Positions 5,224-64,000 of a DNA stretch of 64,000 nt are shown in pieces; within the stretch, counting starts at the first letter, position 1, and the number at the start of each line of letters is the position of its first letter. The position numbers and the translations under genes were made by a program. The stretch comes from Cycas panzhihuaensis (lineage: Eukaryota > Plantae > Cycadophyta). The DNA lies in the NCBI GenBank assembly GCA_023213395.1, contig CM041465.1, forward strand, positions 160,091,741 through 160,155,740, in the 5' to 3' direction. Below the pieces are notes generated by a model. The model was not told the origin of the DNA, ran no database searches, and was given only the letters and a program-made list of their open reading frames with translations.

Positions 5224-5306
5224 TCCCCCTTTAATGTAAACTTTTGTGCTGTAGAAAAAGAAAGTCTTCATCACGATGATCCCCCTTTGATGGAGACTTC
5301 TTTTAT

Positions 5307-10341: not shown

Positions 10342-10366
10342 ATATATATATATATATATATATATA
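10342..10366. repeat. (TA)n microsatellite
   Basis: Direct TA run in the AT-rich leader of Copia 1. Confidence 0.9.
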
Positions 10367-11930: not shown

Positions 11931-11942
11931 GCTCTGATACCA
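11931..11942 (-). promoter_or_regulatory. Primer binding site (tRNA-iMet)
   Basis: GCTCTGATACCA on + reads TGGTATCAGAGC on -, directly abutting the 5' LTR. Confidence 0.95.
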
Positions 11943-12387
11943 TGTGAGAATATGCATATGCATATCATCATAGGATTAAATTAAACATAAAACCATAAGA
12001 AAACAAGTGATATTACATATGTACATAGGTTGACAGGTGGAAAACCCCTTCTAAGGAAGAAAAACCACCTCCTTAAGTTGTATTTTTATTAAGAATAGCT
12101 GTAAACAGATTACCATGCACTGAAACTACCTAATCACCAAACCATCCTTTGAAAATTCATTTAGACAGCCCTCCTAGATTCATGGAACCATCTCCTTGAA
12201 TCTAGGAGATGAATTTATACAAAGAAAGGTTCGTTGAAATGCAGTTCCACATTTCAACCACCTTTCACATAAGATAAATTAATAAACATTAAAGTTTAAA
12301 CATTATGATAACTTAAATATACATTTAGACATGTGACTTAAATATAAACTTTAAAAAGAACATAAAGATTACATTAACATTCTAACA
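11943..12387 (-). repeat. 5' LTR of Copia element 1
   Basis: TGTGAGAA...TCTAACA; paired with 4781-5223. Confidence 0.95.
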
Positions 12388-17822: not shown

Positions 17823-17907
<85 letters not shown>

Positions 17908-33840: not shown

Positions 33841-33934
<94 letters not shown>

Positions 33935-35476: not shown

Positions 35477-35608
35477 AAATACTCTGAGAAATGGACCCTA
35501 GGTCATAATAGGATGTGTAAACCTAAAAGAATGATCTATACCATTAATGTAAATTTAGAAGATGACTTAGATAATGATTATGAAAGGGACTAGCTAAGAA
35601 GTTGATGA

Positions 35609-38600: not shown

Positions 38601-40757
38601 GCATTTACCTTCCTTATCAAATATGGTCCTCATTTTTTTATTGTTGAGTTAATATATAAAGAGAAGATTCATCTTTAATCTAGGTATAAGAAGGACATTG
38701 CCAATCTTTTTTATGATTCCTTATAGATCAATATCTATGGCACCCACTGTTTTAATATTCAAGAGATGCTTGTCTTCTAATTCGACTAATTTGTTAGTGG
38801 AGTAGAGCTTAAGTGAAATGAACCAATCCTCTCTTCTTGTCATGTGTCACGATACTCCAGAGTTAATATACCAAACATCTTTATCCTAAATATCTACGGA
38901 TAGGATGATAATGAATGTTGTTTCTTGATCTTCTTCATCTAGTTGCTTCTTGCTATAGTTTCTTACTGGCCTCTTCCCTCTCTAAATGTCTTCTCTCCTT
39001 TGTGGGCATTGATAAGGGTAGTGACCTTGCTATCCATAGTGATAACATATATCAAAGGCTCTATATGAACTTAATAAATAAACTAGCTTACCACATTTGT
39101 AGCACACCCTTACATCTCTAGGTGGATTCACGCACCCACAATCCCTATTCTCTGACCATCTTCCTCATGATGGACTCCTAATTTCTAGAGTTCATCCCCT
39201 TCCTCTATATTGACCTCATCCTCTAGTTCTTATATTTAATCTAGTCATAAAAGCATCTTCTAGTTCAATTGTATCTTTATATCTTTTACTCTATTGCTCA
39301 TGTCTTAACAGTAACCCAATTAGCTCATCAAGTGTCATTTCTTTAATATGATCATTATTTATTATTATATCAATACTCACATTGAATGACTTTGGCAAAT
39401 TTTCTACTATCATCTCCACTGTCTCTTGTTTTGTAATAGTTTCCCCTATACTTAATACGTCATTGTTGACTATAGTAACCTTATGAATAAATTTAGATAC
39501 TGTTTGAGTTTCTTTCATATGTAATTTGAAAAACTCTTATTTAAGAGTTATAATTCTGGCTCTATTCTTCTAGAAAAATAAGTTCTCAAATATTTTCTAC
39601 ATTTCAAGCTAGGAATTTAGTTTATTAATATAAGCTAAAAGATGATAAAAAATAGACATTTTTAGTGTTATCACCATAAGATTATTCCTTTCCTCCTAAC
39701 CGTTCAAAGTATTGTAAGCAGTTATAGGCTTTTGGTTAATTATATTTGTTAAATTCTAGGCATTTTTGGCTTGTAGAAGAGTTCCTATGATCTTGCAAAT
39801 ATGTTAATTTGAGTCAGTGAATTTATCTTGATCTCCTAAGGCCAAAATAGATGAATCCATTTTCCTTCAATAGAGACTAAGATGGCAGTGAGAGTCCATA
39901 CAAATGTATAGATTTTCATATGGATATAAAGTTCTATAGATAGGAGCAAAGAGTACGTCAAATTGAAGTACTAATCAAGATAAACTTGAATGTAAAATCC
40001 TTTTTCAGAGATCACTTTTAATTTAGGAGAAAACTAGTTTGAAAACCCTATAGGGATGACTAGGGTTTTTCTCAAAAAAACTTCAAACTAAAAAATATTC
40101 TATAAAAAATCTTAAGATTGGATTCAATCAAGTCAAAATTTACTTTAAGAGAGTTTATGAATAATTTCTTAGAGAAATTTGAGAAAAATCAGAGGAAATT
40201 TTGACTTATCTCTATAAAACCTGTGCATCTAGTAAATTAGATAAAACGACCTAAAAATGACCTCTGATTGATTCATGGAAAAAGAGAAAGTTGTTGCAAA
40301 TGATGATGTCAATCTATTGGCCAAATTTTATTGAAAATTGAGCACTTTAATTTTTATGCATTAGTATGGTTGTATAGTTTTGTACTATCTGTATGATTTC
40401 TTATGTTTGTCTTCTACACTTACACTTTACTTGATCAATTTGATAACTTGCTTCAATCAATAGTTTTCTTATGAATATAACCAATTAGTATTTTAGTTTC
40501 TAGTAAAAAATCACCTTCCTTCATAAAAAAGATCTCTCTCAAATAGGTAAGAGAACCTGCTTTGATACCATCTAGGAACTTGATGTTGAATGAATGAGAT
40601 AAAACTCACTTGTATTATTATGGGAATGAATACCTCCTTAAATATACAAGAAATAATATAACTAAAATATGCATAATTAACACGTGTTAAAAAAATATAC
40701 AAATAATATAAAGAGTGGTTATAACATTTACCTAAGATAAAACATTACATTCTAATA
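35609..40757 (-). mobile_element. Full-length decayed Copia element with short (187-bp) LTRs (Ale/Ivana-like size)
   Basis: LTRs 35609-35795 and 40571-40757. Perfect TSD GATGA (35604-35608, 40758-40762). PBS GCTTTGATACCA at 40559-40570. Pyrimidine tract after 35795. Confidence 0.95.
35830..39860 (-). pseudogene. Copia gag-pol pseudogene
   Basis: Gag MKETQTVSKFI...LPKSF...TLDELIGLL.RHE; protease WYINSG; integrase IKCIRSNSGGEY; RT TIRPDISYSV; RNase H HVEVHHYFI..TDILTKPL. Confidence 0.92.
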
Positions 40758-42479: not shown

Positions 42480-44512
42480 GTATAAGTATTATTCTTTATA
42501 TCAAGAAAGGCATATCAATCATATTTCCACAATCTCCCCAATAGTAAATGGCATGCATCCATTAGGATAACATCACACCATGTCTCATCCTGATATGATT
42601 TTCTAATGCTAAATTTAACCAAGCATCTCCTATAAATAATCACCTCATTTCCTTTTCTGAACCAAGAAATGTGGTATGGATGTGGATGTGCTTTATAACT
42701 TAATCCTAACTTTTCTACCATTTCATTAGAGACCATATTCTCATAACTATAACTATCAATTATAACTTTATATACATTTCCTCCTATAGTACATCTTATT
42801 CTAAAAATATTGGTTTGCAACCATGAATCATCATCTATTTTTGCCTTTCCTTTATCCTTTATGGGTTGTTGCCTTGATGATATTCTACCTCTATATAAAG
42901 ATGATAAACCTCTTCTTATCATAGAGGGGCTTTGAGTAACATGTTTAGTTTGCTTCTCTTCTTCCCTTAATATTAATTAATATGCATCTTCTATGCTTTT
43001 AACATTATGCATGCTAAGTTCATCTTGAATTAAAAATTTTAAACTATTTATGTACCTTATAACAACTTGTTGATTTATCTCCTTATGCTCTACATGAATG
43101 GAAAGTTTATAGAACTCATGTATATAGTCTTGTACTATTATTTCTTTCTACTTTAAGTTATGAAACTTTCTAAAGAAGATTTGAGAATAATCAATTGGTA
43201 GAAACTTCTTTTTCAATTTCTTAACCATTTTAATGCATGTTCTAATCTTTTCTTTACCTTTCTTCACTCTCTCCATTTGTAAATGATCCCATCAAATAGT
43301 GCATATCCTTTTAATTTTGTGTATGCAAAATTTACCTTCTTTTCTTTAGTCATACCTTCCTATTCAAATAATGTCTCCATGGCATTTAGCTAGTCTACTA
43401 GCTCCTCTTATTTTAAACTCCCTTGGTAGTCTGGAATATCAATCTTGATTCCATCTCTCTTATCTTCAAGTGATTCTAAGAATATTTCTTCCATTATTTA
43501 TGGTTCTTATAGCTCACCATCTTTTAATCTTGTACCATCATTACTTAATGCCTCTTCTTTATTAGTATTTTCTTCACATTTTTATCTTAATACTATAGTA
43601 GCAAGTTACCCCATTCTTCTCTATAGCTCTTACAAGTTTCTGTTCATTTTAGAATAGTTTATTCTTCCTCCTTTTCTTGCCATTTTTTATTTCTCTTCTC
43701 TTTACCTTACCACTTTGGGTTCTAAAGCTTCTCTTATAAGCTTTCTATAAGGCTTCTAAACCCCAGTGAGAACTTCCTTACCCTTTTAATTAGAATACTT
43801 TATAATCTATGTAGTTTCTTAAATAAATATCTACTACAACATCTCAAACTTTTATGGTTTCTTCCTTTAACCATATAGTTAAACCATGCTCTAATACTAG
43901 ATGATGAGGATGGCCTATAAGGAAAACATTCAATCTTACATGCATAAACTTAAAGTAAGAAAATACCAAAGAATAAAGAGAGATGTTTTACTTCTAAATC
44001 TATTCCATTTAATTCAATTTACCAAAAGACAATCTAAAATTATATTTATATAAGTGAAAGTAGGAAGTCCAAAAACTTCTAACCCAAACCTTAAAAACTC
44101 CTTAATTACTTAAAATAATAAATAAAAACCACATTTTTAAGTTAAGTTCTACTAAGAAAAATTAGGCCACTAAGGGTTATTATATAAAATTAAAAGCTAG
44201 TCTAAAATTAACTATTATTTTTAGGTCTACAAAATAAATCTTAACTTTTAGGCATTTTTGGAATATTTTTTGGCTAAAAAACTATAGGTCTGAGATAGGG
44301 TCTTCAACCCATTCATAGGCCATTTTCACTTGTTGTGCTTAGATAGACATTCATTTTAGCATAGAAATGTTGAATTCTAACCACTAAGTAAAAAGTTATA
44401 CTTCAATTAATAGAACCTAAAATTTAGAGAAAAATGAGTATAAGATGAAAAGTGGTTTAAGTCATTATGAAGGTCTATATGCTTCCATATTAAATATCCT
44501 TATTGCTCATCA
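42480..44512 (-). mobile_element. CRM-like Gypsy 5' fragment: LTR, PBS and gag-protease
   Basis: ORF 42515-42922 reads IFRIRCTIGG..VIIDSYSYENMVS..HPHPYHISW..WCDVILMDACHLLLGR. PBS at 43888-43899. LTR 43902-44512 is bounded by the inverted termini TGATGAG...CTCATCA. Confidence 0.87.
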
Positions 44513-44544: not shown

Positions 44545-47500
44545 TGTTAGGAAACATAAATATATAAATAGGATTAAGAATCATTTATGAATATAATAAA
44601 CTTGAAAAGAATCAATACATGGCACAAATAGATTTAACATAGGAACTTGGTTGGGAAAAACCCACCACAAAAATATTATTATCATATTTTTATAAATCTA
44701 TCATATTATATTGCAATGGACTTTGATCTATATTTATAGGTCATAAGTGCCTCTAATAATAATAATAATAATTAAATTTATATTTGTCAACCTAATATAA
44801 TAGATCAGCATTATCCATATAATATATCTATATTAATATTAGTTGGTAAGTGACATAAAGTCACTCTAACATCCCCTCTTAATGTAAATGTGGGGTCTTA
44901 AAGTCTTCTTAGACATTTATCTATCTTTATCCTTATTGATAGATTCTCTCTCAAGGATAACCTCATTGAACCCTAAATTTGCACAAATATTGATATAGCA
45001 ATCTTTAGTAAAAGCTTGGTGAACACATTCTTAAGTTGATTTTCACTTAGATAAAACTCAACCTATATCTTCCCTGATCTAATTTTCTCTCAAATGTAAT
45101 GGTTCTATGTGTCTTATGTGTATGATTCTTTTGAAATATCTCCAATAGTCCTTAAAACCATATAACTCTTTTACCTTGATACTTAGTCCATGAAACTCAT
45201 CTTATTTCCTTAACTAAACTAAGAAGTTGAGCCAATTGAACTATGTGAATCTCCTCTTTTGTTAAGGAATGCTGACATGATGTGACTCCTAATTATATCT
45301 AGCTACTAAAGTAAGGATTAATTAGACTATAAATAACATAGAGACTGGTGCAACTATCTTTTCATACCTGATTCTTTCTTCTTACTTGAAATCTTATATA
45401 ATAAGCTTTACCGACTTGAAAATCAACTAGGTTTTTTGAGGGAGTTAAGGGACCCAAATCCCATATAAATCACCCCTCCATAATTGTAGCTTTCCATTAT
45501 GAATATCGACTCATTAGAATCATTGGTGTCTATCACAAGTTTAGTTGGCATGTTGATCCTCATTCTTTAATCATCCTTTAGGTCTTCAACTGTTACACTG
45601 GAGTCCTTAATAGTCCTCCTAGCTTACAATGAAACACGAGGTTATAATCCATGCCTATTCTTATAATGACTTCTCATCATCACTCCCACTATGTCCTACT
45701 TCAATCTTAAATATAATGTTAGGAAATCAAACCTCTACACCTACTAAACCATGACTTAGAAAGAGAAGAAATAAAGGATAAAACCTATGTTTAGATGACA
45801 CCTCAGTATGATACATTATTAACTCTTCAACTTGATATCTGGACTAATGATAATGCTTTTCTCTGTAAATCATATAGTTTATAAGCTTTGTTTTAAACCC
45901 CATACAAATATACTTCAAATTCCTATAATTCTACTGCTATAATCTTCATCTAAGATGCATGCGCTCTAATGCACCTCAAATACATAATGGAAGCCTTTTG
46001 ACTAATCCAATACAATCTATGGAATATGCCATAAGCAACCTCAATAGGTACCTATTAAATAGTTATCACGATAACTTCTTCTATAAAACATGGAAGGCAA
46101 ACTTGTTTAATGCATTAAACACCTCCACATCTATATCATGGCACTATACTTCATTTGCAACATAATCTTACATGGGGTACATAGGACAACCACTCTCATT
46201 TATACCATGATAAAGGTAGAATTGATTTTAAAGTATCTCATTATAGACCTTTCTATTTATACTTTAATTTCATCATAACCATATAATTAAATCTATATTG
46301 GACCTAATCAAATATGTAAATATGTTGAACCGATAACTAATAAGCTATAAACCCTCAAACTAACATCAGTTCAACCATCTAAAGTATAATAGTCCACCAA
46401 CATTGATAACCATTTATACAAGCAAACTAATAAATAGAAATTCTAAACTCTTCGTCTCATACATATATGATGTAAAAAATCTTGATATAACTAAATAAAA
46501 CACCATTATATAGTGAATAAACCATATCTTTGAATAATATGTAGAATGATTTAGACCACTTCAATAAAGTTTGCTTTGCCTTATAGCGTAATATCATAAT
46601 AAAACTCACCCATTCTTACCCTCTTATCAATTAGCGATAATTCATTACCTTAATACCTCACCCATTATACTCTCTCATGTAAATACATGCTAGAAGAGCA
46701 TATAGTCACCTCATATTGCCAAATAGTCACCAATTAAGGGTGCCCAATATACTTACTTTGCCACATCTTAATGTCATCTCATATAACCATTCAAATTACC
46801 ATGACACATCACATAAAAACATGTATAATTCGTTTACTTTGACCTTATACCACTCTACTCAAATGCTAAAAAACAACGACTTGAAAATGTCATATCAAAA
46901 ACATAACTCAAGGGACAAGCTATTAATATTATCAAATAAGACTTTGATATATCCCAACAGGCATTAAAACATCTTCGATAAGATTAATACGGCTTTGAGA
47001 ATCAAAGTGCACCAAAATATTTTATAAAATAAAGGTGATCTTCTTTAATCAAAAGTGAGTGTAATAACTTTGATAAATATCAAATATCATTATGCAAGAT
47101 AAGTGACTTTATTGAAATAATATTTAATGTCAAATATGAAATATATCAAAATGGTGAAATGATATCATAAGGGTAACTTTGATTATTATCAAATGTCATT
47201 TAATATATGAAATAGTGGTGCAACTTTATAATATATACAAATATGAATTAATAAATATCAAAATAGATGATTAATATTAAAACTAATGATAATTAAATAA
47301 AGCATAAATCAAATTGTTGAGCATATAACTATACATAAATTAAGTTAGTGATTGATTAACTCATATCATTTGTGATAATATTTTAGTGACAATAAAATAA
47401 TATATAGGTGATATCAATATATTGTAGTAATTAATTATCAAAATAATTTAACATGATGTAACGCAACTACGTTAAATTATATGGATGAGGTAATATAATC

Positions 47501-48433
47501 CACGATAATTAATAATATATCATCATGCATTTAACCTAATAGTGAATAAAATATATTATCAATGACAAGCAATAAAATAATATTTTAATGTGGGAAATAA
47601 AATTTAGAGAATACCTTATTATTCACCATAAATAATCTGCGATGACCTACAATCATACCTCCATAGAGTGATGTCTCTTTGGTTAGCTCATCTTTGTGTG
47701 TATTCTCCATAGATTGTAATCTTCATATGGATCTTTTCTACTTTTAAGCTTTAAAACATAATCACCATGGCTCACAAGGGTAGATCTAGCATTAATAGTG
47801 GTACCAGGGGCTATAATAAGCTCATTAATAGCTTGTAAAGTATATGGTTTCACTACAGGAGGCACCAACACTTGTATAAACCAAAGTAATACCTTTCACT
47901 TATCTACACACCTTTACAAACTATAGAATCCTTGTAAAATAGAAAATAGAAGGCTATGAGATCTACACATGACCATCACACCTTTGTGGTTATTATTTTA
48001 GTTGTTAGATAAGTCGATCCTCAAAGGGTAAGCCAACATGACCTGGCAACTAATAATCGAATGATCTACCTAACATACACCTAATCGTGCACCTCCTCAT
48101 ACTTTAATACAATGTTAGGAAACATAAATATATAAATAGTATTTAAAATTATTTATGAACACAATAGACTCAAATAGAATTAGCACAGAGGATAGATAGA
48201 TTTGACATGGGAACCTATTTAGGAAAAATCCACCACAAAAATATTATTATCATACTTTTACAAATCTATTATATTACATTATAATGGATATTGATTTATA
48301 TTTATAGATCATAAGTGCCCCAAATAATAATATTCAGATTTATATTTGTCAACCTAATATAATACATCTATATTATTCACATAATATATCCATATTAACA
48401 TTAGTTTGTAAATGATATAAGGTCACTCTAACT
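44545..48433 (-). mobile_element. Internally deleted, decayed Copia element inserted into the integrase of another Copia
   Basis: LTRs 44545-44871 and 48113-48433. Degenerate PBS at 48101-48112. PPT at 44872-44880. RNase H end (NVFTKAF) near 45010 and integrase remnants at 45900-46250; no RT motifs seen. TSD TATTT/AATTC; its removal restores host RKMNKTLVE. Confidence 0.85.
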
Positions 48434-50328: not shown

Positions 50329-51029
50329 TTTGAGTAAAAAATATGTAAAATAATTAGAAAGAAATTAAATAAATACAAAAATAAAGTATAAAAATATAAA
50401 AGTAATCAATATACATGCAAGTAGCTAGATAGTTGATATTTTACTTCCTTAGTCTATTTTTAAGTAGCTAGAATAAGTTTTATTGGAGTTAATCATCATC
50501 ACTCCACTCCCACCTTTCCAACCAGGATTGTACACCTCATCAACCTTTAATTTAGACATGTGATACTCAACATGTCGAGGTAAGTTAAGGTAACTTTAAC
50601 TTTGAGTTAAGTTAGTTTCATTTGAGTTAAGTTAACATTATTTTATTATTATTTTAAATTCAGGAGTTGAGGAGTTTCACTCCTCCCCCAAATTATAAAT
50701 ATTGAGGGGTGTGCAACCCTAGTGTCTTTAGACACTACCCTCATTTGGGAAATTTATAATGCTCACTTCTCACAATGGATTGAATACAATGCTTTCATGT
50801 GTTTGTGCTATCATGCTACATTGATCTATTGATGATTTATGATTTGTATTGATCTATTGAAGATTATTCTATGTTCTGCCCTATTCTCCTATAAAAATAT
50901 TTTTCTAACATTTGGTATCAAAGCAGGCGATTGTTGATCTGTGAAGTTTTTTAAAAAAGTAAGAAGATTTTGAGACAGATTTACTCAAGGAAGCAAAATA
51001 CTAGTTATACTTATTTTTTGCATAAAAAT

Positions 51030-51780
51030 TTCAGCGATTTTCATATATTTTTCAGCAGATTTGCTTATTATTAAGATATATTTATGCTATAACAAGTATA
51101 TTTCAGATTTTTTCACAGATTTGTGTAGATTTATGAAGGATTTCAGTAGCAAGCCATATTTGCTCAAGTCCTTTTCTCAGATTTGAGTCATATTTCTTCA
51201 GTTCTACACATTTTATCTTATATTTCATCATTATTTCAGTAGCAAGTTATATATATTTAAATTTTTTCTTATATTTAAGTTATTCCTCTTCAGATCTATA
51301 GTTTTATCATATATTTGACAGTTTACAAGTAATTTTGTTGTCTACTTATTTGATATTTTTCGCAGATCTACAAAGAATATCAGTTGCATGCAAGCTTCAT
51401 ACTATTTTTTCTTCAAGATCTGTAATTTTACTTTAAGATCTACCATATTTTTCTTAGATCTGGAATATTTTACTTAGATCTACTTGTTTCATGAAGTATT
51501 ACAACATTTTCTAGTATAGTTATTTTAGATCTGTAACATTTACTTTATATCTGCCATAGTTTTTTTTAGATCTATTATATATTTTTCTAGATCTACTTAT
51601 TTTAATATTTTCTGGTATATTTATTACAGATCTACAACATTTAGTTTAGATCTGTTATATTTCATTTCAGATCTATATTTTTTCATCATATATTTGACCA
51701 TATTTTTAAGTCTTTTCACAGATCTGTAATTTTTGGGGCATATTCAGCCTTCTAGAGAAGCATATACAACAGATCTCATT
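51030..51780. repeat. Degenerate short tandem array built on AGATCT/AGATTT cores
   Basis: More than 15 irregularly spaced (T/C)AGATCT or AGATTT motifs downstream of the PBS of element A. Confidence 0.7.
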
Positions 51781-52141
51781 TCTACAAGCCAGCACTGTAA
51801 ACTAATTTACTAGGTTCTTCATGTGTTTTTTAAAATATAAATATATACATATATTTTATTTTGATGTATTTTTGTGGATATACTTAAAAATCTAGTTATT
51901 TTTATGGATATATTAAAAAATTTGGTTTGTTTAATACATTTGAGTAAGCAGGGTGAACATATATCTCATTTTATTTAGTTACAATTATATAGATATATTT
52001 CTTATTTATTTGTTATTACTTCCTTAATATATTTATAAGCTTTGGAATCATCTACTCTATTTATGCCCTCTTTGCATTCTCCGTTTGTGTGGTCTTCCAT
52101 TCGTGGCATCCCTTTATCCACGTAATCTTCTGTGTTAACTT

Positions 52142-52292
52142 GTTATGCTTACTTGCATACCTCTAATTCCTCAGTAACTTCGGGTCCATCCCTTTCATGG
52201 ATGTATATCAATGTTTTTTTTGGCATTTTGATGCCATTCTTGTGAGCCTTGTATGATTGATTATGTGTCGTGTAATACTGAGACTTTGCCAT
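52142..52292 (-). pseudogene. RPL29: Captured 60S ribosomal protein L29 coding sequence (near complete), antisense to element A
   Basis: [48 protein letters not shown], compared with the plant RPL29 pattern [24 protein letters not shown]...GMDPKFLRNQRYARKHN. One frameshift in an A-run and two stops. Confidence 0.93.
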
Positions 52293-52450
52293 CTCCCTGT
52301 CTCCACCGTTATAAATTCGTTATTTGAGATCTTTATGTGAAGAAGTTCAGGTTCCGTTGGATATTTTAAGCTTAACAAGTGGGTTCTTGAGCACCAAAGA
52401 TTTGACCTTTGGTCATCTCTATGTACTTGGGATGGTAATTATCAATTTGG

Positions 52451-52624
52451 AGTCTTGGAACTGTCTGCTTTATATTGCTCAATATACAACCGAATAGTTA
52501 CACCTTCGAATCCTATTCCAGAAAGTTAAAACGCCAATCAAGACCCATCTTCAAAAGGATAGTGTATACCTTAGTGTTTTGAAATAGATCCATCAATAGG
52601 ATCTGTACATTCAAACTCATCATC
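52451..52624 (-). pseudogene. PGM: Captured cytosolic phosphoglucomutase C-terminal fragment, antisense to element A
   Basis: [55 protein letters not shown], compared with [58 protein letters not shown]. Confidence 0.93.
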
Positions 52625-52877
52625 TTCTCCACTGTATTTCTTTATGTTAATAGAGCTGAGAGCCATCGTATTTCTTTGTTCTTTATTCTTTATTCTTCAT
52701 CTATTTCCAAAATTACTTGGCGCTAACCTCCTTAGTCTGCATATTTGCGGTACAACATATTAGTCTATGTTGAAGTAATTGATGGTGGTACAGTTTTTTT
52801 CTTTTATAAATTTTGGAGCTCTCTGTTCCTTGAGGGAGGTGATTTATTTAATTGATCATGGCTATTATTTGTATGCA

Positions 52878-53300
52878 ATGTTCCATAGCCTTCTATAGTG
52901 ATTTCTCATCATTTTTGGGTACTTGATGATAGCCATCGATGGTTACTACATGGGCATTTTTCTGATGTATGTCACATCTTAAATCCACATCCTTGTAAGG
53001 GTAATCCTCTTCATTGTCGATCCTGCCATTGTTCACGATGAACTAAAAAGCATAGTCCATTAGACCATCATCGTATCCTTCATTATACTTAGTATCACAA
53101 CTCACCAGCTCTTGCTTGGAAAGACTGATCAAATCCTTCGTCATAATTTGATTTATTCCCATCAACAATCGCTACAACTGAGAATGCTCAGCAGCTCCCG
53201 TAAGAGCCCTGATCCTTGACCTTGACTATTGCTCCTTTGTTCCTCCAATCCACAAACTCGGGCAACTGATCTCCTTATTTAAATAGAAATTTGGTGCTCG
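52878..53300 (-). pseudogene. Captured papain-family (C1A, RD21-like) cysteine protease fragment, antisense to element A
   Basis: [31 protein letters not shown]...[90 protein letters not shown]. Includes the catalytic QGSCGSCW region and has no intron. Confidence 0.95.
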
Positions 53301-53476
53301 ATCCATTTAGGAACAAAGAATTCTCTCTTTCATGTGCTTATGCCTGACGATGTTTGAGTTTCTTGGCCCTTCCCATGCTATTGTAGATGACTGCACGACC
53401 ACCATCTGAAAGGAGGGCTAATAAGAGGCAGCAATAGAAGTTTTTTATACTCTAATCTCAAACTCAGACTAGGAAC

Positions 53477-53539
53477 AAAAGGCTAGCATCTGCTCATATC
53501 TGCACTTCTAACTTTAGTGACATACTCACGAATCGAGAA
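53477..53539 (-). pseudogene. Captured fragment with the N-terminal FSIR..WPF motif of EMF1/EMF1-like proteins, antisense to element A
   Basis: FSIREYVTKVRSADMSRC*PF matches the FSIRxYxxxxRxxDxxxCWPF motif. The match is short. Confidence 0.65.
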
Positions 53540-53692
53540 ACTTTCACTGGTGAAATATAGACACTCGGTCTGAGAAGACATCAGCATATTTTTGACAGAA
53601 ATCAATATCTGCTTCAAGATTACATAAAGTTGTAGCCATAGATTATGTTCCCTATCTTATAACCACTGAAGAATGTTGTATTCTATATGAGT

Positions 53693-53863
53693 TAGATCTG
53701 CCAAGCTGCTATTAATTAGTTGTCAATATCGAAGTCTTTATCTTCTAACACCAACTGCACCTGCTGTTACTAGTACAACTTCAAAGCTAGCTGATATTAT
53801 TTCTTTCACCTTCTCATAAAGGGAGGTAAGACGACCCAGTGCAAGCCATCCATTAGCTCTGGT
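53693..53863 (-). pseudogene. P5CS: Captured delta-1-pyrroline-5-carboxylate synthase N-terminal fragment, antisense to element A
   Basis: TRANGWLALGRLTSLYEKVKEIISASFEVVLVTAGAVGVRR*RLRY*QLINSSLADL, compared with [57 protein letters not shown]. Confidence 0.92.
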
Positions 53864-54279
53864 TTTACACGTTTTTCATGTGTTCCTCTGTAAAGAATAG
53901 CCTAGATTTGCTCCAACGTCTATAAATAAATAAATAAAAAGGAGAAAAACCCATTTCTATCTCTGCATTTGTTCATTCCAATAGCATTCTCTTATTCACA
54001 TCTTCCACTAACTTTGCTTTCATTCAACATGTTCTTCTTCTGTGGCACATTGTTTCAGTAGTTTCTCCATCGTTGCAGCGTCGTACGAGGAATTTAATTC
54101 CGCACCCATCATTTTATTTTATTTTTATTTTCTTTTCCTTTTTGTATATATAAATATATACTTATTTCCTTTAATAAGAGCGGCTCGTCTGACTCATTGT
54201 AGATTCAAACCGATTCTTTTTTATTAAGTTTTTTGTTGTTTTTTGGCTGTTTGTTAGGCGATTTCGCCCTATCTTATTT

Positions 54280-55375
54280 TATTTTTAATTTTATAAAGTT
54301 TTTCAAATTTAAACCATATTGCATAAAATTTGAGATCTGAGGTTTATTAAATACATAAGCCCCCTTGAGCTTCTGCCACTGGTCACTTATATTCTCCATG
54401 TGACCATCGTCTATCTAAAGGGGCTTTATCACTTTTACAAACTTTTATTTTTTTTATTTATTTTTTATTTTTTATTTTTACATAGGATTACTAGAGAATT
54501 TTTACCATAACTCCTCACTGAGACATCAGTTTCTTACGAAACTAGTTTCATTGGATCAAAAATTTTTTGTAGATCAATTTTCACTGGTCATATGACTAAT
54601 TTGGTACTGATTTGACCCTGTTTCAGTCGATTTAAAGTCAATTAATCATTTTTTCAGCCTTTTTTAACCTTTTTATAAAATCACTTTTTAAACTGATTGT
54701 ATTTTATTACTAGGAACCTATTTTGTACCCATATTTATTTTAAAGTGATCTACGTTTAACAAACTTCATTATCCATTTTTTATTTTATTTTTTAGAATTC
54801 ATTTTGACCACTATTTTAATCATCGAAAGTGGCACTTTAGTGGTTTTTAACCTTTTTCTTAACATTTTACCACAATAGTACTAGTTACTATTTCTACTAT
54901 AACTTTTTTGTTTGACATCCAAATTTAGTTCTGTCAGTTTTGTTGAGAATTTGACTTAATTCTCTTCAATCTAATATAGTTTTTGATATATTTTAATGTA
55001 TTTTTTTTACTGATTTTTAAATTGCTCAAAGTAGAGGTACTTTATTACTTTAGACCTACCATATTTACATTTTTTTATATATAATTTTTTAATTTTTTTT
55101 AATTAAGAATACATTGAGCAGTCCTATAATGATATTTGATTGTTTTACAGTATTTTCTAAGTATTTTATTGCCATTTTTATACAATTTTGAGCCCCCTAC
55201 TCTTGTTGTGGCTCAAAACAAGGCCTATACCTTTGATTTATCAAATCTTATAGGAACCCGTTTTCAAAATGTTTAGTTCCGTTGGATTCATATTTTATTT
55301 ATCTTCATACTCATAAAATTTCATATCATTCTAATATCATTTAGTATATTTTTAAAGCTATCAAACTTAAGGTTG
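54280..55375 (+). repeat. Shared internal scaffold, colinear with the reverse complement of 60710-61900
   Basis: For example ACTGGTCATATGACTAATTTGGTACTGATTTGACCCTGTTTCAGTCGATTTAAAGTC versus ACTGGTCATGTGACCTATTTGGAGCTGATTTGACCCATTTTCAGTCAGTTTAAAGTC. Colinear anchors continue through to TAGGAACC(C/T)GTTTTCAAAA. Confidence 0.9.
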
Positions 55376-55775
55376 TCCTCTAACCCTTTTTTTAAAAAAT
55401 TTCTTTATACTCCTTATCTTTCAAAGTAAAATATACATATATTTCAGTTTTTTCAACATTATATATTATCATCAAGGCTAAGGATTTATTGCATTTAGAA
55501 TTTATATTTATTCATTTGAAGAAAATCAAAAGGTTAAGGATTATCCCTTTTATCATTAAAGTTACATTTCAGATTTGTATTGCTAAAAAGATCTTTATTA
55601 CATGCAAATTTACTTATATATCCATCATTTCCTTATTGTGCCTAGTTGATTGACTTTCTAAAGAGCATTACATCTACTTCAAAATCTTTATTTGAAATCA
55701 TATATATTCATTATATTTATTAACCTTCTTGACTTAGTAAATGCATACTTTCATACTAAAGTTTTTCTTGATAAA

Positions 55776-56260
55776 ATGGCATAATTTTCCATTTTCAATA
55801 GCCATAACTTTTCACTATGGTATAACACTATGCACGACTATTTTATTGAACATGATCTTATAAAATATTTACAATGTGAATGTGATCTCAGTATTAAAAA
55901 AAAAATTAGAAAGAACAATAAAATTTTAGGATTATTCTTTTGTACTATTCATGATGATATATTTTCAAAGGTTTCTGAATTAACAACTTCTAAATTTGTT
56001 TGGGATACATTAATTTCTACTTATGGGGGAGATACTCTCCATGTATTTGATAATATTTTTGATGAGCATGTGAGATAGGTGACAGAACAAGTGGATGATG
56101 ATGACAAAACTAATGAAGATTCAGATCAAATGTAGGACCAACTTGCTACACAAGGATTTGATCCTCCATTTGAGCGGGAGAATGAAAATGAATCCTGTGA
56201 CATGATGGAGAATGAATATGATATGACAAAAAATAAATCTTATGATATGAAAGTTATTGA
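55776..56260 (+). pseudogene. Truncated Copia gag N-terminus with an acidic tail (element A)
   Basis: FNSHNFSLWYNTMHDYF...KNNKILGLFFCTIHDDIFSKVSELTTSKFVWDTL aligns with gag of element B (KDNKALALIFCALKDHVFQRVSELVKSKESWDTL). Confidence 0.85.
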
Positions 56261-56949
56261 TAGGAATGCTATTATTTTGAATTCAGGGGTTGAGGAGTTT
56301 CCCTCCTCCCCCAAATTATAAATATTGAGGGGTGTGCAACCCTGGTGTCTTTAGACACTACCCTCATTTAGGAAATTTGTAATGCTCACTTCTCACAATG
56401 GATTGAATACAATGCTTTCATGTGTTTATACTATCATGCTATATTGATCTATTGATGATTTATGATTTGTATTGATCTATTGAAGATTATTCTATGTTTT
56501 GCCCTATTCTTCTATAAATATATTTTTCCAACAAGTTTAAGAATATAAAATTTTAATTTTTTTTCAAAATTTTACATAAAAGTATTACATGTGACTACTT
56601 TTAGATTATAGATCTAAAAAAAATAGACATTATGGTATATTAACATATCTAAAATAGATTTTAAATTATCCAAAAATACCCCTAATACCTTGTAAACCAC
56701 ATGAGTAGGGATTGATAGGTTGAGAGCTTTGTCACAAACTCTATTTTTTTATCAAATATGACTTAATATATCCCTATCTTTGTAAAAGTTAAAAAATACA
56801 TTTATTAAAGTTTTTAATAAAATATTCTCTCAAAATATTCCCTCCAAGATCTTAAGTAGCACTTGACCTCCTCAAAAATTAAATTTTCCTCCAAAATTAG
56901 AGGCATTTCTTCAATAAATCACATTATTATTATCAATGATATCGTATGC

Positions 56950-57809
56950 TAAAGTCAATACATGTTATTACATATGAAAATGTTTAAGAACATTCCAAGG
57001 TTTAGGGCACAAGAGCATCTGATCTTATAGAGAAGTCAATGTGAAAGCCACAATTGCATGATTAAGAAAGAAAAGGTTAAGGGCAATTATTATTTTATGT
57101 GCACTAGTTATATATCTCTACCAATGGGATTAGAGTGCCCATAGTCCACCAATAGGATGCTAGTATTAATGACCATTTTTGCTTATATAAGTCTAAGCAA
57201 TTGTAAAAGTAACACTCATGCTATATTATTATCTTTTGAGAGTATACAAGAGTACATCTTATCTTTAGTGATCATTAAGCTTCCATGTGCACCTTTAATA
57301 TAATTTTGCTATTGAATCATTAATAGAGATCTATTGAGATTCTAGTTTCTTTAAAAATTATTCTTTTGTATGTAACCTCTAGTTCATATCATAGCAAGTG
57401 GTATTGGAGACAAGCTTGATAATGCTATGGAGTAGTTAGAAGCTAGAAAAGGGATTTTTTTCCCCCTTGGTGACTCTCATATCTTCTATCTTTTAGTTTT
57501 AATTTTTATTAAAGGGTAGACAACACTACTTGGTGGCTATCTTTTCCATTCCCTCCTATTGCCCCCTTAGTTCTTGGGTAGATCACTCTACATGGCAACT
57601 ACCTGCCATAGGTAAAGACCCTATCATAGGGGTCTTTAAACATCATGAAGGATATGTCATTCTTATCTAAGTGCATTGTGGCTTTTCTACCCTTACATGA
57701 AGGACTTTAGTTGACTCCATTGAATCAAGCCTTAGATATAACTTATATATGGAATTAAGCCTTAAATGATCTCTTTTAGGATTCTCCTTCCTTACTTAGA
57801 ATAGGTAAA
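56950..57809 (+). mobile_element. Remnant LTR, PBS and leader related to 28830-29800; interrupted by element B
   Basis: CATAGCA-AG-TGGTATTGGAG near 57390-57410; leader motifs shared with 29420-29555. Confidence 0.5.
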
Positions 57810-58164
57810 TGATGGATTTAGAGGAGCAAAGTAGGACTTTAGATCGAGTACATTTTGAGAAAATAGGTGATTTCTGATTATTGGTGGTGTTAAAAAACAC
57901 CAGGGAGGTATTCCCACCCTTTAAATAGAGTTTTTGGGGAGGCGACAAGTGCCATCACCCTACCTGCATGTTAGCTAATGTATAATTCAAAATATATTAA
58001 AAAAAATAACAATAATAAATAAAAGCACATACCTTAATAAAATGGTGTAAGCTCTTGGTGGCTATTAGGGGGCTCAAGGTGCCCTAGGGGCCCTCAAAGG
58101 TGGCTTTGAGGGGCCCTAGGTGCACAATTTTTTAATAACATTAGGATTATTCCTAATATTCTCC

Positions 58165-58570
58165 CCCATAAGCCCAATGTGTACGACTCCCAATTTGTCT
58201 CTAAACTTCTCAAATTTGATCTTTCCCAAAGCCTTTATAAAAATATCTGTTGCTTGATTTTCGGTGCTATAATAAGTTAACTCTATCTCATCTACTTGTA
58301 CAAGTTCTCGTATAAAGTGGTGTTGAGTCTCAATATAATTTCTTCTACCATGGAACATTAGATTTTTGGCCATTTGGATAGTGCTTTGATTGTCACACTA
58401 AATTCTAGTGGGACCTTGTTGTTTAATCTAAAAATCCTGTAAGAGTCTTCTTAGCCATATTGATTCATAAGCTCTTAAAACTGTAGCTCTATACTCTGCC
58501 TTAGTTGTGGATAAGGAAACAGTATTTTGCTTCTTTGTACTCCAAGCTACTATTATTGATTCCATACTGA
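58165..58570 (-). pseudogene. Copia RNase H C-terminal remnant
   Basis: WSTKKQNTVSLSTTKAEYRA..IWLRRLL..DNQSTI.MAKN.MFHGRRNYIET.HHFIRELV..QATDIFIKAL. Confidence 0.9.
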
Positions 58571-58812
58571 TGATTCTCAACTTGTCTCTATTGATTAGGA
58601 TTTCTTAGAGGATCTTCATGTTGTTGGGATCCTCCTTGCCTCTTTTGGTGAGTGGCTTGATATTGTAGAGAGTCTTATTTAGTTTCCTTTATAGGATTTC
58701 CATCTTTTCTCCTTGGAGGAGATTCCTTTTATCTTAAGGTTCCTGCTTGGGAGTTAGATTGAATGCAAGCCTTTGTAGCAAAGATATGTTCTAAAGATTT
58801 ATTTGTATTTTG

Positions 58813-59403
58813 CTACTCTTCTATAGACATAAGCATAGTACTAAGTTGTTCTACTTTGAGGGTACTTAGATCCTTTGATATACTAATACTAGTAGTTACC
58901 ATTTCATAATGTCGTACAACTCCTACACATCTAAGGATCCTCTCAACTACCCTTTGTTCGATTAGGATATCTCTAACTGACCTCATTTGGTTAACAATAT
59001 CTTGGACTTTGGCCATGAATTCAGTTATTGATTCATGAGGCATCATATGTAAATTTTTAAACTTACTTCTCAAGTTTTGTAGTTTAGAGGAGGTAACTCC
59101 TTCATATATTAGTTGTAAAGTGTCCCAAGATTCTTTGGACTTAACTAATTCACTAACTCTTTGAAACACATGATCTTTTAAAGCACAAAAAATAAGAGCT
59201 AAGGCTTTGTTATCCTTTTTGACATTTTCCTTGTCTATAATTTTTTTTGGATCATACAGATTTGGTCCTAATTCATTGTAATCAGTTCGCACAATGTCCC
59301 ACATGTTGTTAGGTATAAGGATGGTTCTCATCCTTCTACTCCAGTTTAGAAAATTATTTCCATCAAAATTTGGGATAATTATGTTCCCAAAACTAGACAT
59401 CAT
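58813..59403 (-). CDS. Copia gag (UBN2-type), 196-aa open frame, probably truncated
   Basis: FDGNNFLNWSRRMRTIL..MWDIV...KALALI...SWDTL...KLQNLRSKFKNLHMMPHESITEF..IVNQMRS...VVERILR...KDLSTLKVEQL...L.SIE. Confidence 0.85.
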   Translation of the reverse strand: MMSSFGNIIIPNFDGNNFLNWSRRMRTILIPNNMWDIVRTDYNELGPNLYDPKKIIDKENVKKDNKALALIFCALKDHVFQRVSELVKSKESWDTLQLIYEGVTSSKLQNLRSKFKNLHMMPHESITEFMAKVQDIVNQMRSVRDILIEQRVVERILRCVGVVRHYEMVTTSISISKDLSTLKVEQLSTMLMSIEE

Positions 59404-60709
59404 TTTGAACTAAAATTATGTTGATTAAATGTGACAAATAAGATTTTAAAAGTTAAATGTAAATATAAAACATATTTGAATTAAAATTTAAAAAAGGTTC
59501 CAATGTAAAAATTTACTTCCAAATATAACCCAAGGTTTTTTTCAAAGTTTTGAATAAGTAAACTAGGGCCTATTAAGGCTACTAGGCTCTAAGTTTAAGT
59601 TTCTCTTGGGGTAACCTTCAATTATTATCATGTTTAGTGGTGCCTTCCCACAGATGGTAGAACAGGGACCCAATATACTGGTACGTGAGCACTAGGCTCT
59701 ATATACCTCAATACGTGGGCTGCTATAAAGGTTTTTACATCCCCCTAAATTGTTGGTCCAGTTGTGCCAGACTTATACTTGGCAACAAATATAGCGATGA
59801 AGGTTCCTGAACTAAGGCACTCACCCTCTAGGTCTAGCCTTGGTCTCCAAACACCATAAAAGGAACATGTTCTACACCTCAATCTACCACCGAATACACC
59901 TGATAGCTAATAGTTGTCCTCATCCAATATGAGTAGGTCGATTAGCATGTGTGGGGTGGTAACTTTAGGGGTCCTAACCATTCCCCTTGCAAGGCTAGAA
60001 AAATAGTGTGGTTCAATTCAGGATTATCTTATTTAATGTAAAAAAATAGATTAATTAGCAATGTGGTCTTGCTTAGAAAAAAAAGGATTCCTTTTATATA
60101 ATAAAGAAAAACTTGAAAATAGAATAATAATCTCTAAGCAAGATGAAATAAATATTAAACTTTTTCAAAGAAATAAGACACTGAAATATTTTTTCAAAAA
60201 GAAAAAATGCAATGCTTCTTTAAATGAATGAAAAAAGCCTTTGAAAATTAAATAAACAAAATGTAACTTTTATAAGTGCAAGAAAGAAATGATATTTTTC
60301 AACAATGATGAATAAAAAATAAGAAAAAAACTTTCAATAAGTGAATGCCTTTTAAATAAATGACAAACTTATAGGATATAATTTCAGATAAACTTTGAAA
60401 TACAAGGAAATTTTAAATATAACTAAGATCCTCTTTAATTATGCAAGACTGAATTAAAACTTTGATGATGAAAAATAAAAAATTCTTAACCTTTCGATTT
60501 TTAAAATAAATAAATATAAACTTTTTAATGTAAGAAATCATTTGTCTTGAAGAAGATATATAATGCTGAAAACTGAAATATATATGTATATTTTACTTTT
60601 AGAAAAATAAAGAAGAAACTTCAAAAAAAAAAAATTATACCTATTTAAGTTGCAAGTCCAATTGACTTATCACTTGTTTTATGATCAATTTCTATTAGGA
60701 TATCCTGAA

Positions 60710-61900
60710 AGCTCAAGTTTAGTAGCTTCAAACTTGTACCAAATGATGTCAGAATAAAGTGAAATTATACCAATATGGAGATCAACAAAAGATTTATTTA
60801 ATGAAATTGATTGTTTTGAAAACAGGTTCCTACAAGTCAATATTTTAATGAATAAAATATACAGTCCTCTTTTTGAGGCCTAACGGGAGCCTAGGGCTCA
60901 AAATATTATAAAAATACTAGTAAAAATTTATAGAATACTGTAAAATAATCAATTATAGTTTGGAAGGTTACTCAATGTACTTTTTAATTGAAAACTTTGA
61001 GAAATAATATATAAAAAATGTGTAATTATGGTAGATTAGAGGCTATTAAGTACCTCAAATTTGATGGTTTTGAAAATCTAAAAAAATACTTCAAAACTTA
61101 TAAATAATAGTGTTAGTTTGAAAAGCAGTGAGTCATGTTCCCAACGAAACTGGCAAATTTGAATTCAGATGTAAAGCAAAAAAAGTTATAATGAAAATGG
61201 CAACAAGTACTTTTATGGTAAAATGTTTAAAAAGTGTTAAAGTGTCACTTTCATCAATTAAAATTATGATTAAAATAAATCTTAAAAAATAAAATGAATA
61301 GATAATAATAAAGTTTGTTGACAATAGATGGCTACAAAATAGATTTAGGTAGAAAATAATCACCCGGTAATAAAATATAATCTAATGAAAAATGGATGTT
61401 ATGAAAATAGTTTAAAATGGTTTTAAAAATAAATGACCGACTTTAAACTGACTGAAAATGGGTCAAATCAGCTCCAAATAGGTCACATGACCAGTCAAAA
61501 TTGCACCATAGAAAATTCTAGATGTAATGGGATAAGTTTTGGCAAAAATTGATGACTTAATCAAGAGTTATAGCTAAAAAAATCAAGTGCCTTATGTTAA
61601 AAAAAAATTAAAAATAAAAGGTAAAATGTTATATCCTTAAAATAACCCTCTTAGAATATCAACCTGAGGGTAGATTGGGTAGGGATTGAACCCAAGACCT
61701 ATCAAAAGATAAACCCCTCTAATGCCAAGAGGGTGAACTCACTCGTCAAGTTTAAAAAATAATAAACTTAAAAAATAAGGCCCCTTTTAGTAATGAGCTA
61801 AAAGACACGTGGAAGAGACACACACCCAGGGACTAAACGCCAAAAGCTTAGATCTCAAAAATTATTTAATTTAATTTAATTTTTAAAACTTTATAAAAAA
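60710..61900 (-). repeat. Shared internal scaffold of element B (homologous to 54280-55375)
   Basis: Colinear reverse-complement similarity to element A. Confidence 0.9.
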
Positions 61901-62198
61901 GTGTATATGGGTAAAAATTATCATCACGATCGTATAGATACAAATGAGGTACACTACAAATATAATTAAAATCGAAAAAGACTAAAGAAAAAAAATGGAA
62001 TCATCAATCTTAGTAGGCACACTTAAAAAATACATAGATATATACTATGGATGAAAAAATAAAAAAATAAAAAAAAAGGATTTGAGTGATTTCGCTCCTT
62101 CACCTTCATCGTTGGAATTCCTACAAGTAAAAGAGAATCGGGGAACATTAGACGAATGTGTGACAATAGTGCTAGTCCCAAACGATAAAACAGGGGGT

Positions 62199-62320
62199 AA
62201 GACTAATATTTATACAGATGGCTTAGACGACCGAGAGCATAGAACATATCTATGGTTCAATCCCACTGTTTACGTCTACACGTATTCTATATTCTTGAAT
62301 CTTTACCACATTGTGTAAGT
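62199..62320 (+). pseudogene. XTH: Captured xyloglucan endotransglucosylase/hydrolase (GH16) exon fragment ending in a GT|GTAAGT donor, antisense to element B
   Basis: KTNIYTDGLDDREHRTYLWFNPTVYVYTYSIFLNLYHIV, compared with QTNVY.NG..DREQR.YLWFDPT.DFHTYSILWN.HQIV. Similarity stops at GTAAGT (62315-62320). Confidence 0.9.
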
Positions 62321-62349
62321 TTATTAGCCTTTATTATTTGAGAGAAGCA

Positions 62350-62520
62350 ATGGTGATCGCTCAGTTGGGCAAGGGCGTTAGTTTCAGGTCATACGAGGGT
62401 CTTAGGCTAGTCCCAGTTAGCAGATCTTCCACTAAACCTTCCACCATTGGCTCAAGATGCTTTCCCTATACAAGTTTAGCGGTGAGGACAACAACCATAG
62501 TGGCTCCAAAATTCACATCA
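62350..62520 (+). pseudogene. CPN20: Captured chloroplast chaperonin 20 N-terminus (transit peptide), antisense to element B
   Basis: MVIAQL...FRSYEGLR......SLAVRTTTIVAPKFTS, compared with CPN20 MAATQL...SLDGLR...RLVVKAASVVAPKYTS. Preceded by 5'UTR-like GAGAGAAGCA. Confidence 0.75.
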
Positions 62521-62968
62521 AGAGCATCAAATAAAGGACTCAAGGGAGGGGAATGAGATTCCACTGATGGGAGAAACAACATGTAGGGGAGCAATGGGAT
62601 ACCACTAATGAGCATTAAACTTAGCCAATGAAAAGATTTTATAGGGTCAGAGAAAGAATGGGATGGCACAAGAGCAGCAAAACAAATAAATCTAGTCCAA
62701 GCCTCGATGCCCAAGTGACTAGAATGAGTGTTGATGATGCTGATAACAAGTAAGACAAGGTAGATACTTCAATCTTAGAGGATAGAAATGAAACCATGGA
62801 AATGATTACAAACTTTGATTAGACTAGTACACAAAGAAATGTTGAAAGATACTGTCAGAACTAAAACATATCAAAATGTGATTTATTAAAATACCTTCCT
62901 CTTTAAGGATAAAATTGTGCTCAATGTTGGAGCTTAAACAGCAATATTAGCTCTTTTTTGTGCAAAGG

Positions 62969-63135
62969 GATTACGTAAAGTTCTACGAAGCATTCTCGAA
63001 GAAAATTAAGTTAGGCATTCACGAGGACAACCAGAACATGGCTAAGTTAGCAGATTTGCTGAGATATTACTCTACCAAGAGTGGAGACTAGATGATAAGC
63101 TTGAAGGATTATGTGATGAAAGATGGAGATGGGGC
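62969..63135 (+). pseudogene. HSP90: Captured cytosolic HSP90 middle-domain fragment, antisense to element B
   Basis: [48 protein letters not shown], compared with [49 protein letters not shown]. Confidence 0.96.
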
Positions 63136-63339
63136 ATAACAACAAAGAACTCTCCCTTCTACCAATATTTAATTTATATGATGGTGGCTTTTATAATCAA
63201 ATGCTTTATATAAAAAAGTAAGCATAATAATGTGATATAATCTTATTAAAATAACTTGGATAATAGCATGCAGGGGGAGCAACAAGATTACAGGCCTATG
63301 GAAGCAAGGGATAACCCAAATCTATATGAGTATAGGCCT

Positions 63340-63515
63340 TTCAATAGGATCTATGTTTAGCCTGATCACACAAATACATCAAATAAACTATATTTTTAAA
63401 TATATTTATGAAAATACATCAAATAAATAAAATATATGTATATATTTGTATTTGAAAAAAAAAAACACGAAGAACCTGGTAAACTGTGACAGGTTTGCAG
63501 TGCTAACTTCTGAGT
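63340..63515 (-). repeat. Upstream shared scaffold block of element B (homologous to 51775-51970)
   Basis: AGCACTG(T/C)AAAC...TTTAC(T/C)AGGTTCTTC(A/G)TGT...AAATATATACATATATTTT...TTTGATGTATTTT occurs in both elements. Confidence 0.88.
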
Positions 63516-64000
63516 GAGAGAACGTCTTTCACAATGGATGAAACTCCAAACCGTCTTCTCCAGTGAATAGGTGAGCTTACTAGGATCTTAACTAGCAGTC
63601 ATATGCAGTTATTTTACTATATGTATGAGAAGCTAGATCAGTATGATCAAATATCAAACACTTCTTTGGCTTTAATACCAAATGATGGATTTAGAGGAGT
63701 AGAGTAGGACTTTAGATCGAGTGAATTTTGAGAAAACAAGTGATTTCTAATTGTTGGCAATGTTAAAAAACACTAGGGAGGTATTCCCACCCTTTAAATA
63801 GAGTTTTTGGGGAGGCGGTAAGTGCCATCACCCTACCTACACATTAGTTGACATATAATTCAAAATATATTAAAAAATATAACAACAATAAATGAAAACG
63901 CGTACCTTAATATAGTGGTGTCAGCTCTTGGTGGCTATTCAGAGGCTTAAGGTGCCCTAAGGGCCCTCAAAGGTGGCTTTGAAGGGCCCTAGGCACACAG

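Follow-up and report, generated by a model that had tools for sequence, protein, structure and literature searches.

Can a retrotransposon hold a fixed position at which pieces of host transcripts are taken up repeatedly, and at which step of reverse transcription would such pieces be acquired? The question is raised by a stretch of 64,000 nucleotides from the cycad Cycas panzhihuaensis (GenBank assembly GCA_023213395.1, contig CM041465.1, positions 160,091,741 to 160,155,740, forward strand; hereafter the window). The final 13.4 kb of this 64-kb window carries two long terminal repeat (LTR) elements that lie tail to tail, element A on the plus strand and element B on the minus strand. A first-pass annotation, made from the letters alone, had proposed that both possess a conserved scaffold with a variable slot, filled in each case with a different chain of host-gene fragments, and had read this slot as a dedicated capture hotspot. 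The slot itself is borne out, in that cargo occupies a positionally equivalent interval, with homologous blocks on either side, in two well-diverged elements.

50647-56533, plus strand: element A, a non-autonomous Ty1/copia derivative of 5.9 kb
57807-63999, minus strand: element B, a non-autonomous Ty1/copia derivative of about 6.2 kb

A variable slot between two shared blocks

Comparison of A with B by BLASTN and MAFFT, with shuffled sequences as a control, identifies two blocks in the leader, upstream of gag, that are common to both elements and stand in the same order and the same orientation relative to gag. The first-pass annotation had described the same pair of blocks, the downstream one proving slightly longer (about 1.3 kb) than it had supposed. 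Between them, as it had also claimed, lies unrelated cargo.

51775-51990, plus strand: upstream shared block of A, 76% identical to 63515-63340
63340-63515, minus strand: upstream shared block of B, pairing with 51775-51990 of A, about 200 bp
51990-54111, minus strand: cargo slot of A, about 2.1 kb, a chain of host-gene fragments antisense to gag
62079-63345, plus strand: cargo slot of B, about 1.3 kb, host fragments antisense to gag
54112-54136, plus strand: T-rich tract directly after the cargo of A, from TRF and the sequence
62052-62078, minus strand (A-rich on the plus strand): T-rich tract directly after the cargo of B in the sense of the element, from TRF and the sequence
54289-55622, plus strand: downstream shared block of A, about 1.3 kb, 71-78% identical to 61898-60397
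60397-61898, minus strand: downstream shared block of B, pairing with 54289-55622 of A

Within the downstream block the alignment runs through sub-blocks that pair 54289-54345 of A with 61898-61843 of B, 54457-55374 with 61618-60709, and 55411-55622 with 60613-60397. Identity across the shared blocks is about 72-78%, against 48-51% for the shuffled controls. The LTRs of A and B, by comparison, are 53% identical (44% in shuffles) and the homologous gag codons 57% identical at the nucleotide level. A non-coding scaffold that is conserved more strongly between the two elements than either their LTRs or their gag behaves as a module, and the excess conservation reflects either a cis-acting constraint or a common ancestor younger than that of the backbones; younger ancestry would mean that the module has been exchanged by recombination. 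Outside the shared blocks the leaders of A and B are unrelated, as are the two cargoes to one another, and the cargo stands out in composition, with 31-46% GC against 17-28% in the scaffold.

Fragments within the slots were identified from stop-to-stop translated pieces, each searched singly against Pfam and, for some, by phmmer against PDB sequences.

52064-52319, minus strand: RPL29 (eL29) fragment of A; Ribosomal_L29e, 1.2e-9 on 52152-52319
52445-52696, minus strand: phosphoglucomutase (PGM) C-terminal domain fragment of A; PGM1_C profile positions 83-107 (3.9e-5) and 44-66 (0.048)
52896-53274, minus strand: papain-type (RD21-like) cysteine protease fragment of A; Peptidase_C1 profile positions 1-26, 37-75 and 77-127
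53741-53863, minus strand: P5CS fragment of A, about residues 27-67; phmmer against Arabidopsis P5CS A/B, 1.8e-5 and 3.5e-5
62199-62315, plus strand: XTH fragment of B, residues 108-146 of poplar XET16A; GH16, 2.2e-4; phmmer, 6.3e-7
62966-63088, plus strand: HSP90 middle-domain fragment of B; HSP90 profile positions 226-266, 7.6e-14

The list of host genes offered by the first-pass annotation thus survives in large part: by profile or phmmer search RPL29, PGM, the RD21-like protease and P5CS stand in A, and XTH and HSP90 in B, while a further label in each element does not. The proposed EMF1 piece of A returned no match in searches. The CPN20-like N-terminus of B (62350-62520, plus strand) has no Pfam or PDB match and none among 1.8 billion representatives, so that its label, drawn from a by-eye ATG, a transit-peptide-like stretch and a VAPKFTS motif only, is unconfirmed. 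Searches likewise failed to support a second HSP90 piece (63046-63210). In each slot about half of the sequence is without a gene match and could be untranslated regions or non-coding transcripts.

Might the similarities be chance or low-complexity matches, with no cargo there at all? The unsupported EMF1, CPN20 and 63046-63210 pieces speak for such a reading. It is nevertheless refuted by matches to six independent families, the best at 7.6e-14, by collinear matches in several pieces and by the GC shift at the cargo, and we give it practically no credence.

The confirmed fragments have a common polarity: all six, of which A contributes four and B two, are antisense to gag, an outcome with a probability of about 0.016 if fragments are oriented independently. 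They are also confined. When all stop-to-stop pieces of both internal regions were compared with Pfam, seven of the 99 pieces from the slots matched host families (five families), against one of 101 from the rest of the leaders, the latter a weak, chance-level match to L27 (0.0043); the difference gives a Fisher p of 0.03, or 0.007 when the L27 match is left aside. Host matches are therefore concentrated between the blocks, as had been predicted, and the scattering of fragments along the elements that would speak against a slot is not seen. A GC-rich island between the scaffold and gag of B, described below, is a possible exception.

The borders of the slot are AT-rich at the end of the upstream block and T-rich directly after the cargo. 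An 11-nt motif of the scaffold, ATTTGAGATCT, has three matches in the window against 0.47 expected and recurs at the junction of the RPL29 and PGM fragments; it was discarded, the extended alignment being no better than shuffles. A short repeat, ATATACATATATTT, which flanks the module, is AT-rich and of borderline significance and was also dropped. Apart from AT-rich chance matches, neither cargo nor module is surrounded by inverted repeats. With no terminal inverted repeats (TIRs) at either, there is no sign of a nested Pack-type element or Helitron.

Anatomy and age of the carriers

Both carriers retain the terminal structures of LTR retrotransposons, including a primer-binding site (PBS) of the initiator-methionine tRNA (tRNA-iMet) type, and little coding capacity.

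50647-50910, plus strand: 5' LTR of A, 264 bp, 95% identical to the 3' LTR; Kimura two-parameter (K2P) distance 0.051
56270-56533, plus strand: 3' LTR of A, pairing with 50647-50910
63680-63999, minus strand: 5' LTR of B, at least 320 bp, beginning at the window edge
57807-58126, minus strand: 3' LTR of B, 88% identical to 63680-63999; K2P 0.133
50912-50924, plus strand: PBS of A, tRNA-iMet type, two bases after the 5' LTR, 12/13 match to TTGGTATCAGAGC
63669-63681, minus strand: PBS of B, tRNA-iMet type, adjoining the 5' LTR, 11/13 match to TTGGTATCAGAGC
55830-56078, plus strand: gag remnant of A, 82 aa; Pfam Retrotran_gag_2, 2e-6
58813-59403, minus strand: intact gag open reading frame (ORF) of B, 196 aa; Pfam Retrotran_gag_2, 1.8e-24
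58116-58580, minus strand: remnants of the pol C-terminus of B, two short ORFs resembling the end of the RNase H region, recognised by eye only
51400-51700, plus strand: A-specific tandem-like repeats of about 20 nt with an AGATCT core; TRF period 20-21, direct-repeat families
59480-60020 (about), no strand assigned: GC-rich island of B, about 41% GC, located between scaffold and gag and without a counterpart in A

The LTRs of B end in TG...CA, and its 5' flank falls outside the window. For A the flanking pentamers, TATTT and AGTTT, agree at three of five bases, the position of its 5' terminus being uncertain. A purine run before the 3' LTR is partial in B, about 30 nt upstream, and weak in A. 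If LTR divergence (K2P) is converted into time with the usual rate of 1.3e-8 per site per year, A would have inserted about 2 and B about 5 million years ago.

Gag is the sole coding domain in A, and B adds only the short pol C-terminal remnant, for whose ORFs Pfam has no match. The first-pass annotation had called the gag N-termini related; the two gag remnants share 44% amino acid identity over 54 aa (E 3e-14), and both belong to Retrotran_gag_2. A search with the B gag protein returned no homologues at E <= 1e-10, and neither that protein nor the conserved scaffold pattern has a match in collections of metagenome contigs or viral contigs. As neither element carries a protease, integrase or reverse transcriptase, both are non-autonomous; they are old, defective, gag-only derivatives of Ty1/copia elements and must have been mobilised in trans.

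The leader that precedes gag is unusually long, 4.9 kb in A and 4.3 kb in B, and each element contributes parts of its own. In A, a segment of about 850 bp directly after the PBS (50925-51774), which is not in B, includes the AGATCT repeats. In B, about 1 kb between scaffold and gag, not in A, includes the GC-rich island, which has no Pfam match on either strand and may represent non-coding cargo lying beyond the main slot. An Rfam scan of the region returned only sub-threshold matches, one of them a histone 3' UTR (untranslated region) stem-loop at 57861-57906 in the 3' LTR of B, which scores 26.7 bits against a gathering score of 34 and is probably chance.

Routes by which the cargo may have been acquired

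The fragments bear signs that suggest an RNA source. Those of the protease, PGM and RPL29 are collinear with the protein and without intron-sized interruption: the three Peptidase_C1 pieces span profile positions 1-127 within 379 nt, and the PGM pieces cover positions 44-107 with no such gap. Plant P5CS and cytosolic PGM genes are divided into about 20 small exons, so that intron-free stretches of 120-250 nt argue for spliced templates. The RPL29 piece, the LTR-proximal one in A, runs contiguously from Met1 to about residue 52 (its C-terminal continuation read by eye) and includes the start codon and sequence upstream of it; it looks like an almost complete small mRNA with its 5' end toward gag, which fits copying up to the 5' end of the message.

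The polarity bears on the step at which such RNAs were copied. A template switch during minus-strand synthesis yields sense inserts. Transduced genes in plant LTR elements are indeed usually in the sense orientation (Vicient and Casacuberta 2020, PMC7264820), and uniform antisense cargo thus calls for a different step of reverse transcription. Switching onto several mRNAs by the reverse transcriptase of an LTR element is, for its part, established (Tan et al. 2016, PMC5131818).

We therefore favour, as the best explanation of the whole, plus-strand copying of co-packaged host mRNAs in old non-autonomous Copia derivatives, an account whose chances of being right we regard as evenly poised. Within the virus-like particle, the growing plus-strand DNA would leave its minus-strand DNA template within the AT/T-rich leader and, growing from the PBS side, would copy co-packaged host mRNAs from 3' to 5', possibly as far as the 5' end. 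By hopping from mRNA to mRNA it could build a multi-gene chain before it rejoined the element where the downstream block opens with its T-rich tract, A-rich in the minus-strand DNA. The expected product would be intron-less, partial, uniformly antisense multi-gene cargo between the PBS and gag. The common position in A and B might arise if the flanking blocks were needed in cis or moved jointly as a module that recombines, and template switching would be favoured by the AT-rich borders. Polarity, position in the leader, multi-gene chains and the T-rich re-entry point all fit this model. What the sequence itself shows is the anatomy, the identities of the cargo, its antisense polarity and confinement, and the excess conservation of the module; RNA origin, plus-strand timing and repeated capture are inferred.

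Several observations weigh against it. If each chain arose in one event, the uniform polarity amounts to only two observations (p = 0.25), and selection against sense inserts could also have produced it. From the PBS to the start of the cargo there are 0.3 kb in B and 1.1 kb in A, a distance that simple read-through of the primer at the strong-stop step leaves unexplained. No support was found for an extension of the P5CS match to the N-terminus of the protein. The XTH piece is followed, directly after its last codon, by GTAAGT, a consensus splice donor, and a weak upstream similarity (an LVPxD..G motif, within 62140-62340) seems to be joined directly to residues 108-146 with about 32 residues skipped, the missing segment being the part that normally carries the catalytic motif. 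This suggests an aberrantly processed, exon-skipped and intron-retaining transcript as the template; not every template seems to have been a normally spliced mRNA. The evidence as a whole comes from two copies.

The same features can be read in other ways. Capture may be rare and take place anywhere in the element, with only those inserts that fall in a dispensable part of the leader surviving further rounds of retrotransposition; the position would then be constrained without there being any hotspot, and the contrast between the two cargoes may go back to a single capture in each lineage, or to recombination between co-packaged RNAs of the family that swapped cargo blocks as a whole. We think this rather unlikely. 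It sits well with the sight of just two copies, with a scaffold conserved beyond LTRs and gag, as expected of cis-constraint or recombination, and with the mosaic evolution of LTR families, which is described as well documented (Sabot and Schulman 2007, as cited in PMC13317346), but it leaves the uniform antisense polarity and the multi-gene chains unexplained. Identical polarity and intron-less fragments would also be predicted if capture took place during minus-strand synthesis from antisense RNAs, namely products of RNA-dependent RNA polymerases (RDRs) or natural antisense transcripts, or from host cDNAs within the particle, and the aberrant-looking XTH piece would suit an RDR substrate. 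Such a route would require, however, that antisense RNAs of many housekeeping genes be packaged, and the RPL29 5' end on the gag-proximal side is slightly better matched by plus-strand run-off; we consider it improbable.

Capture at the level of DNA, whether by a nested Pack-type TIR element or Helitron or as patchwork filler from double-strand-break repair in the leader, appears to us very improbable. Conserved ends around variable multi-gene content are the pattern of Pack-MULEs and Helitrons, a possible retained splice donor comes after XTH, and cDNA capture at DNA breaks is reportedly known. Against this, neither cargo nor module has TIRs or other recognisable termini, the fragments are without intron-sized gaps, and two elements that differ in their LTRs and gag would need an identical nested insertion site and orientation.

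The view of the first-pass annotation that the slot is a dedicated capture hotspot has only partial support from the two copies, which fit both independent capture at one permissive or switch-prone site and whole-block exchange by recombination. The small LTR pairs elsewhere in the window (E2, E3 and E5) and the leader island of an autonomous Copia element have no Pfam host matches, so the window offers no extra replicate. A bolder extension, which we hold to be doubtful, is that scaffold and slot form a distinct recombining cassette which moves between unrelated Copia backbones and repeatedly records abundant mRNAs in antisense through a plus-strand, RNA-templated step, LTR-driven transcription then yielding antisense RNA against host genes and coupling retroelement activity to host RNA silencing. 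In Arabidopsis, the HSP90, P5CS, RD21-like protease and XTH families are linked to stress, and RPL29 and PGM may be named alongside them.

The window and known systems

The remainder of the window is also rich in retroelements. An autonomous-looking Copia element occupies 4783-12387 on the minus strand (LTRs 4783-5223 and 11945-12387, 93% identity; PBS 11931-11943); its leader of 2.4 kb has a GC-rich island at 10500-11900 (35-40% GC), of which ten reading-frame pieces have no Pfam match. Three small LTR pairs at 16748-20345, 31589-35477 and 44545-48432, 3.6-3.9 kb end to end and with LTR identity of 78-83%, have a tRNA-iMet-type PBS on the plus strand in two of the three cases. They look like large retrotransposon derivatives (LARDs) or miniature terminal-repeat retrotransposons (TRIMs), without recognisable cargo, and 51 pieces from them gave no gag or host-gene match in Pfam. 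A degenerate Copia element at 35608-40757, minus strand, has LTRs of 87% identity, a PBS at 40559-40571 and broken gag, integrase and reverse transcriptase frames. At the start of the window, ORFs for a reverse transcriptase of the long interspersed nuclear element (LINE) type and for a zinc finger lie within 349-4020 (40-44% GC), and distant repeats at 20343-21468 and 42594-43380 are found near a retropepsin-like ORF.

Capture of host genes by plant LTR elements has so far been treated as a sporadic, sense-oriented transduction. A family-level module with different intron-less host pieces at a single site, always in antisense, would, if true, indicate that reverse transcriptase turns to cellular mRNAs at a separate and as yet undescribed step. 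It would also generate LTR-driven antisense copies of housekeeping and stress genes in large numbers, through which elements and genes might interact by way of small RNAs. For annotation, such cargo gives rise to false calls of gene fragments and can mislead surveys of retrogenes.

Gene capture by plant LTR elements is known, that by Bs1 included (PMC13317346, PMC3726574, PMC5664825), and multi-gene LTR chimeras have been described in animals (Tan et al. 2016, PMC5131818); a mosaic as such is therefore no novelty. Like A and B, Bs1 and the LTR-mediated chimeras (PMC5131818) combine a defective, gag-keeping LTR element with partial, intron-less fragments of several host genes; they are attributed to template switching within the particle and can be retrotransposed again. 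Their fragments are in sense, replace or are fused with internal ORFs, and are each one-off, whereas those of A and B are antisense, lie in the leader upstream of gag and occupy the same block-bounded interval in two diverged elements. Comparable in structure are the TR-GAG and LARD elements (Chaparro et al. 2015, PMC4350172; a sugar beet survey, PMC13570524), which likewise have an LTR pair, a PBS and only a Copia-type gag (UBN2/Retrotran_gag_2) and depend on a partner. TR-GAGs are defined as shorter than 4 kb (PMC4350172), whereas A and B, at 5.9 and 6.2 kb, are LARD-sized; host-gene capture is not mentioned in either PMC4350172 or PMC13570524.

Genes of RNA origin have been found on a large scale in the LTR retrotransposons of Solanaceae, rice and sorghum (Kim et al. 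2017, PMC5664825; Jiang and Ramachandran 2013, PMC3726574). For the most part these are retrogenes, whole or large, detected through overlapping annotations; the words 'orientation' and 'antisense' occur in neither paper, and in the passages drawn on here no conserved slot for insertion is described. Extra antisense sequence that an LTR family conserves is known from the additional ORFs of Grande, RIRE2 and Retand (PMC7264820), which, unlike the cargo of A and B, lie between pol and the 3' LTR, are constant within the family and have no host homologues. The word 'antisense' is absent from a 2026 review of plant gene capture, and full-text literature searches for an antisense cargo slot or a 'Pack-LTR', with most subscription journals outside their coverage, found nothing.

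Set against this literature, what is new in A and B is that the cargo is antisense throughout, that its position in the leader is conserved and flanked, and that the scaffold is conserved beyond LTRs and gag. Pack-MULEs, Pack-CACTA elements and Helitrons offer a parallel in organisation, in that they too pair a conserved framework with variable multi-gene chains that differ among family members. What they capture, however, is DNA, as a rule introns included, and TIRs or Helitron termini mark their limits, while A and B have no TIRs, hold protein-collinear fragments and use an LTR retroelement as the carrier; the arrangement would, if true, be the retroelement equivalent of Pack-MULEs and Helitrons.

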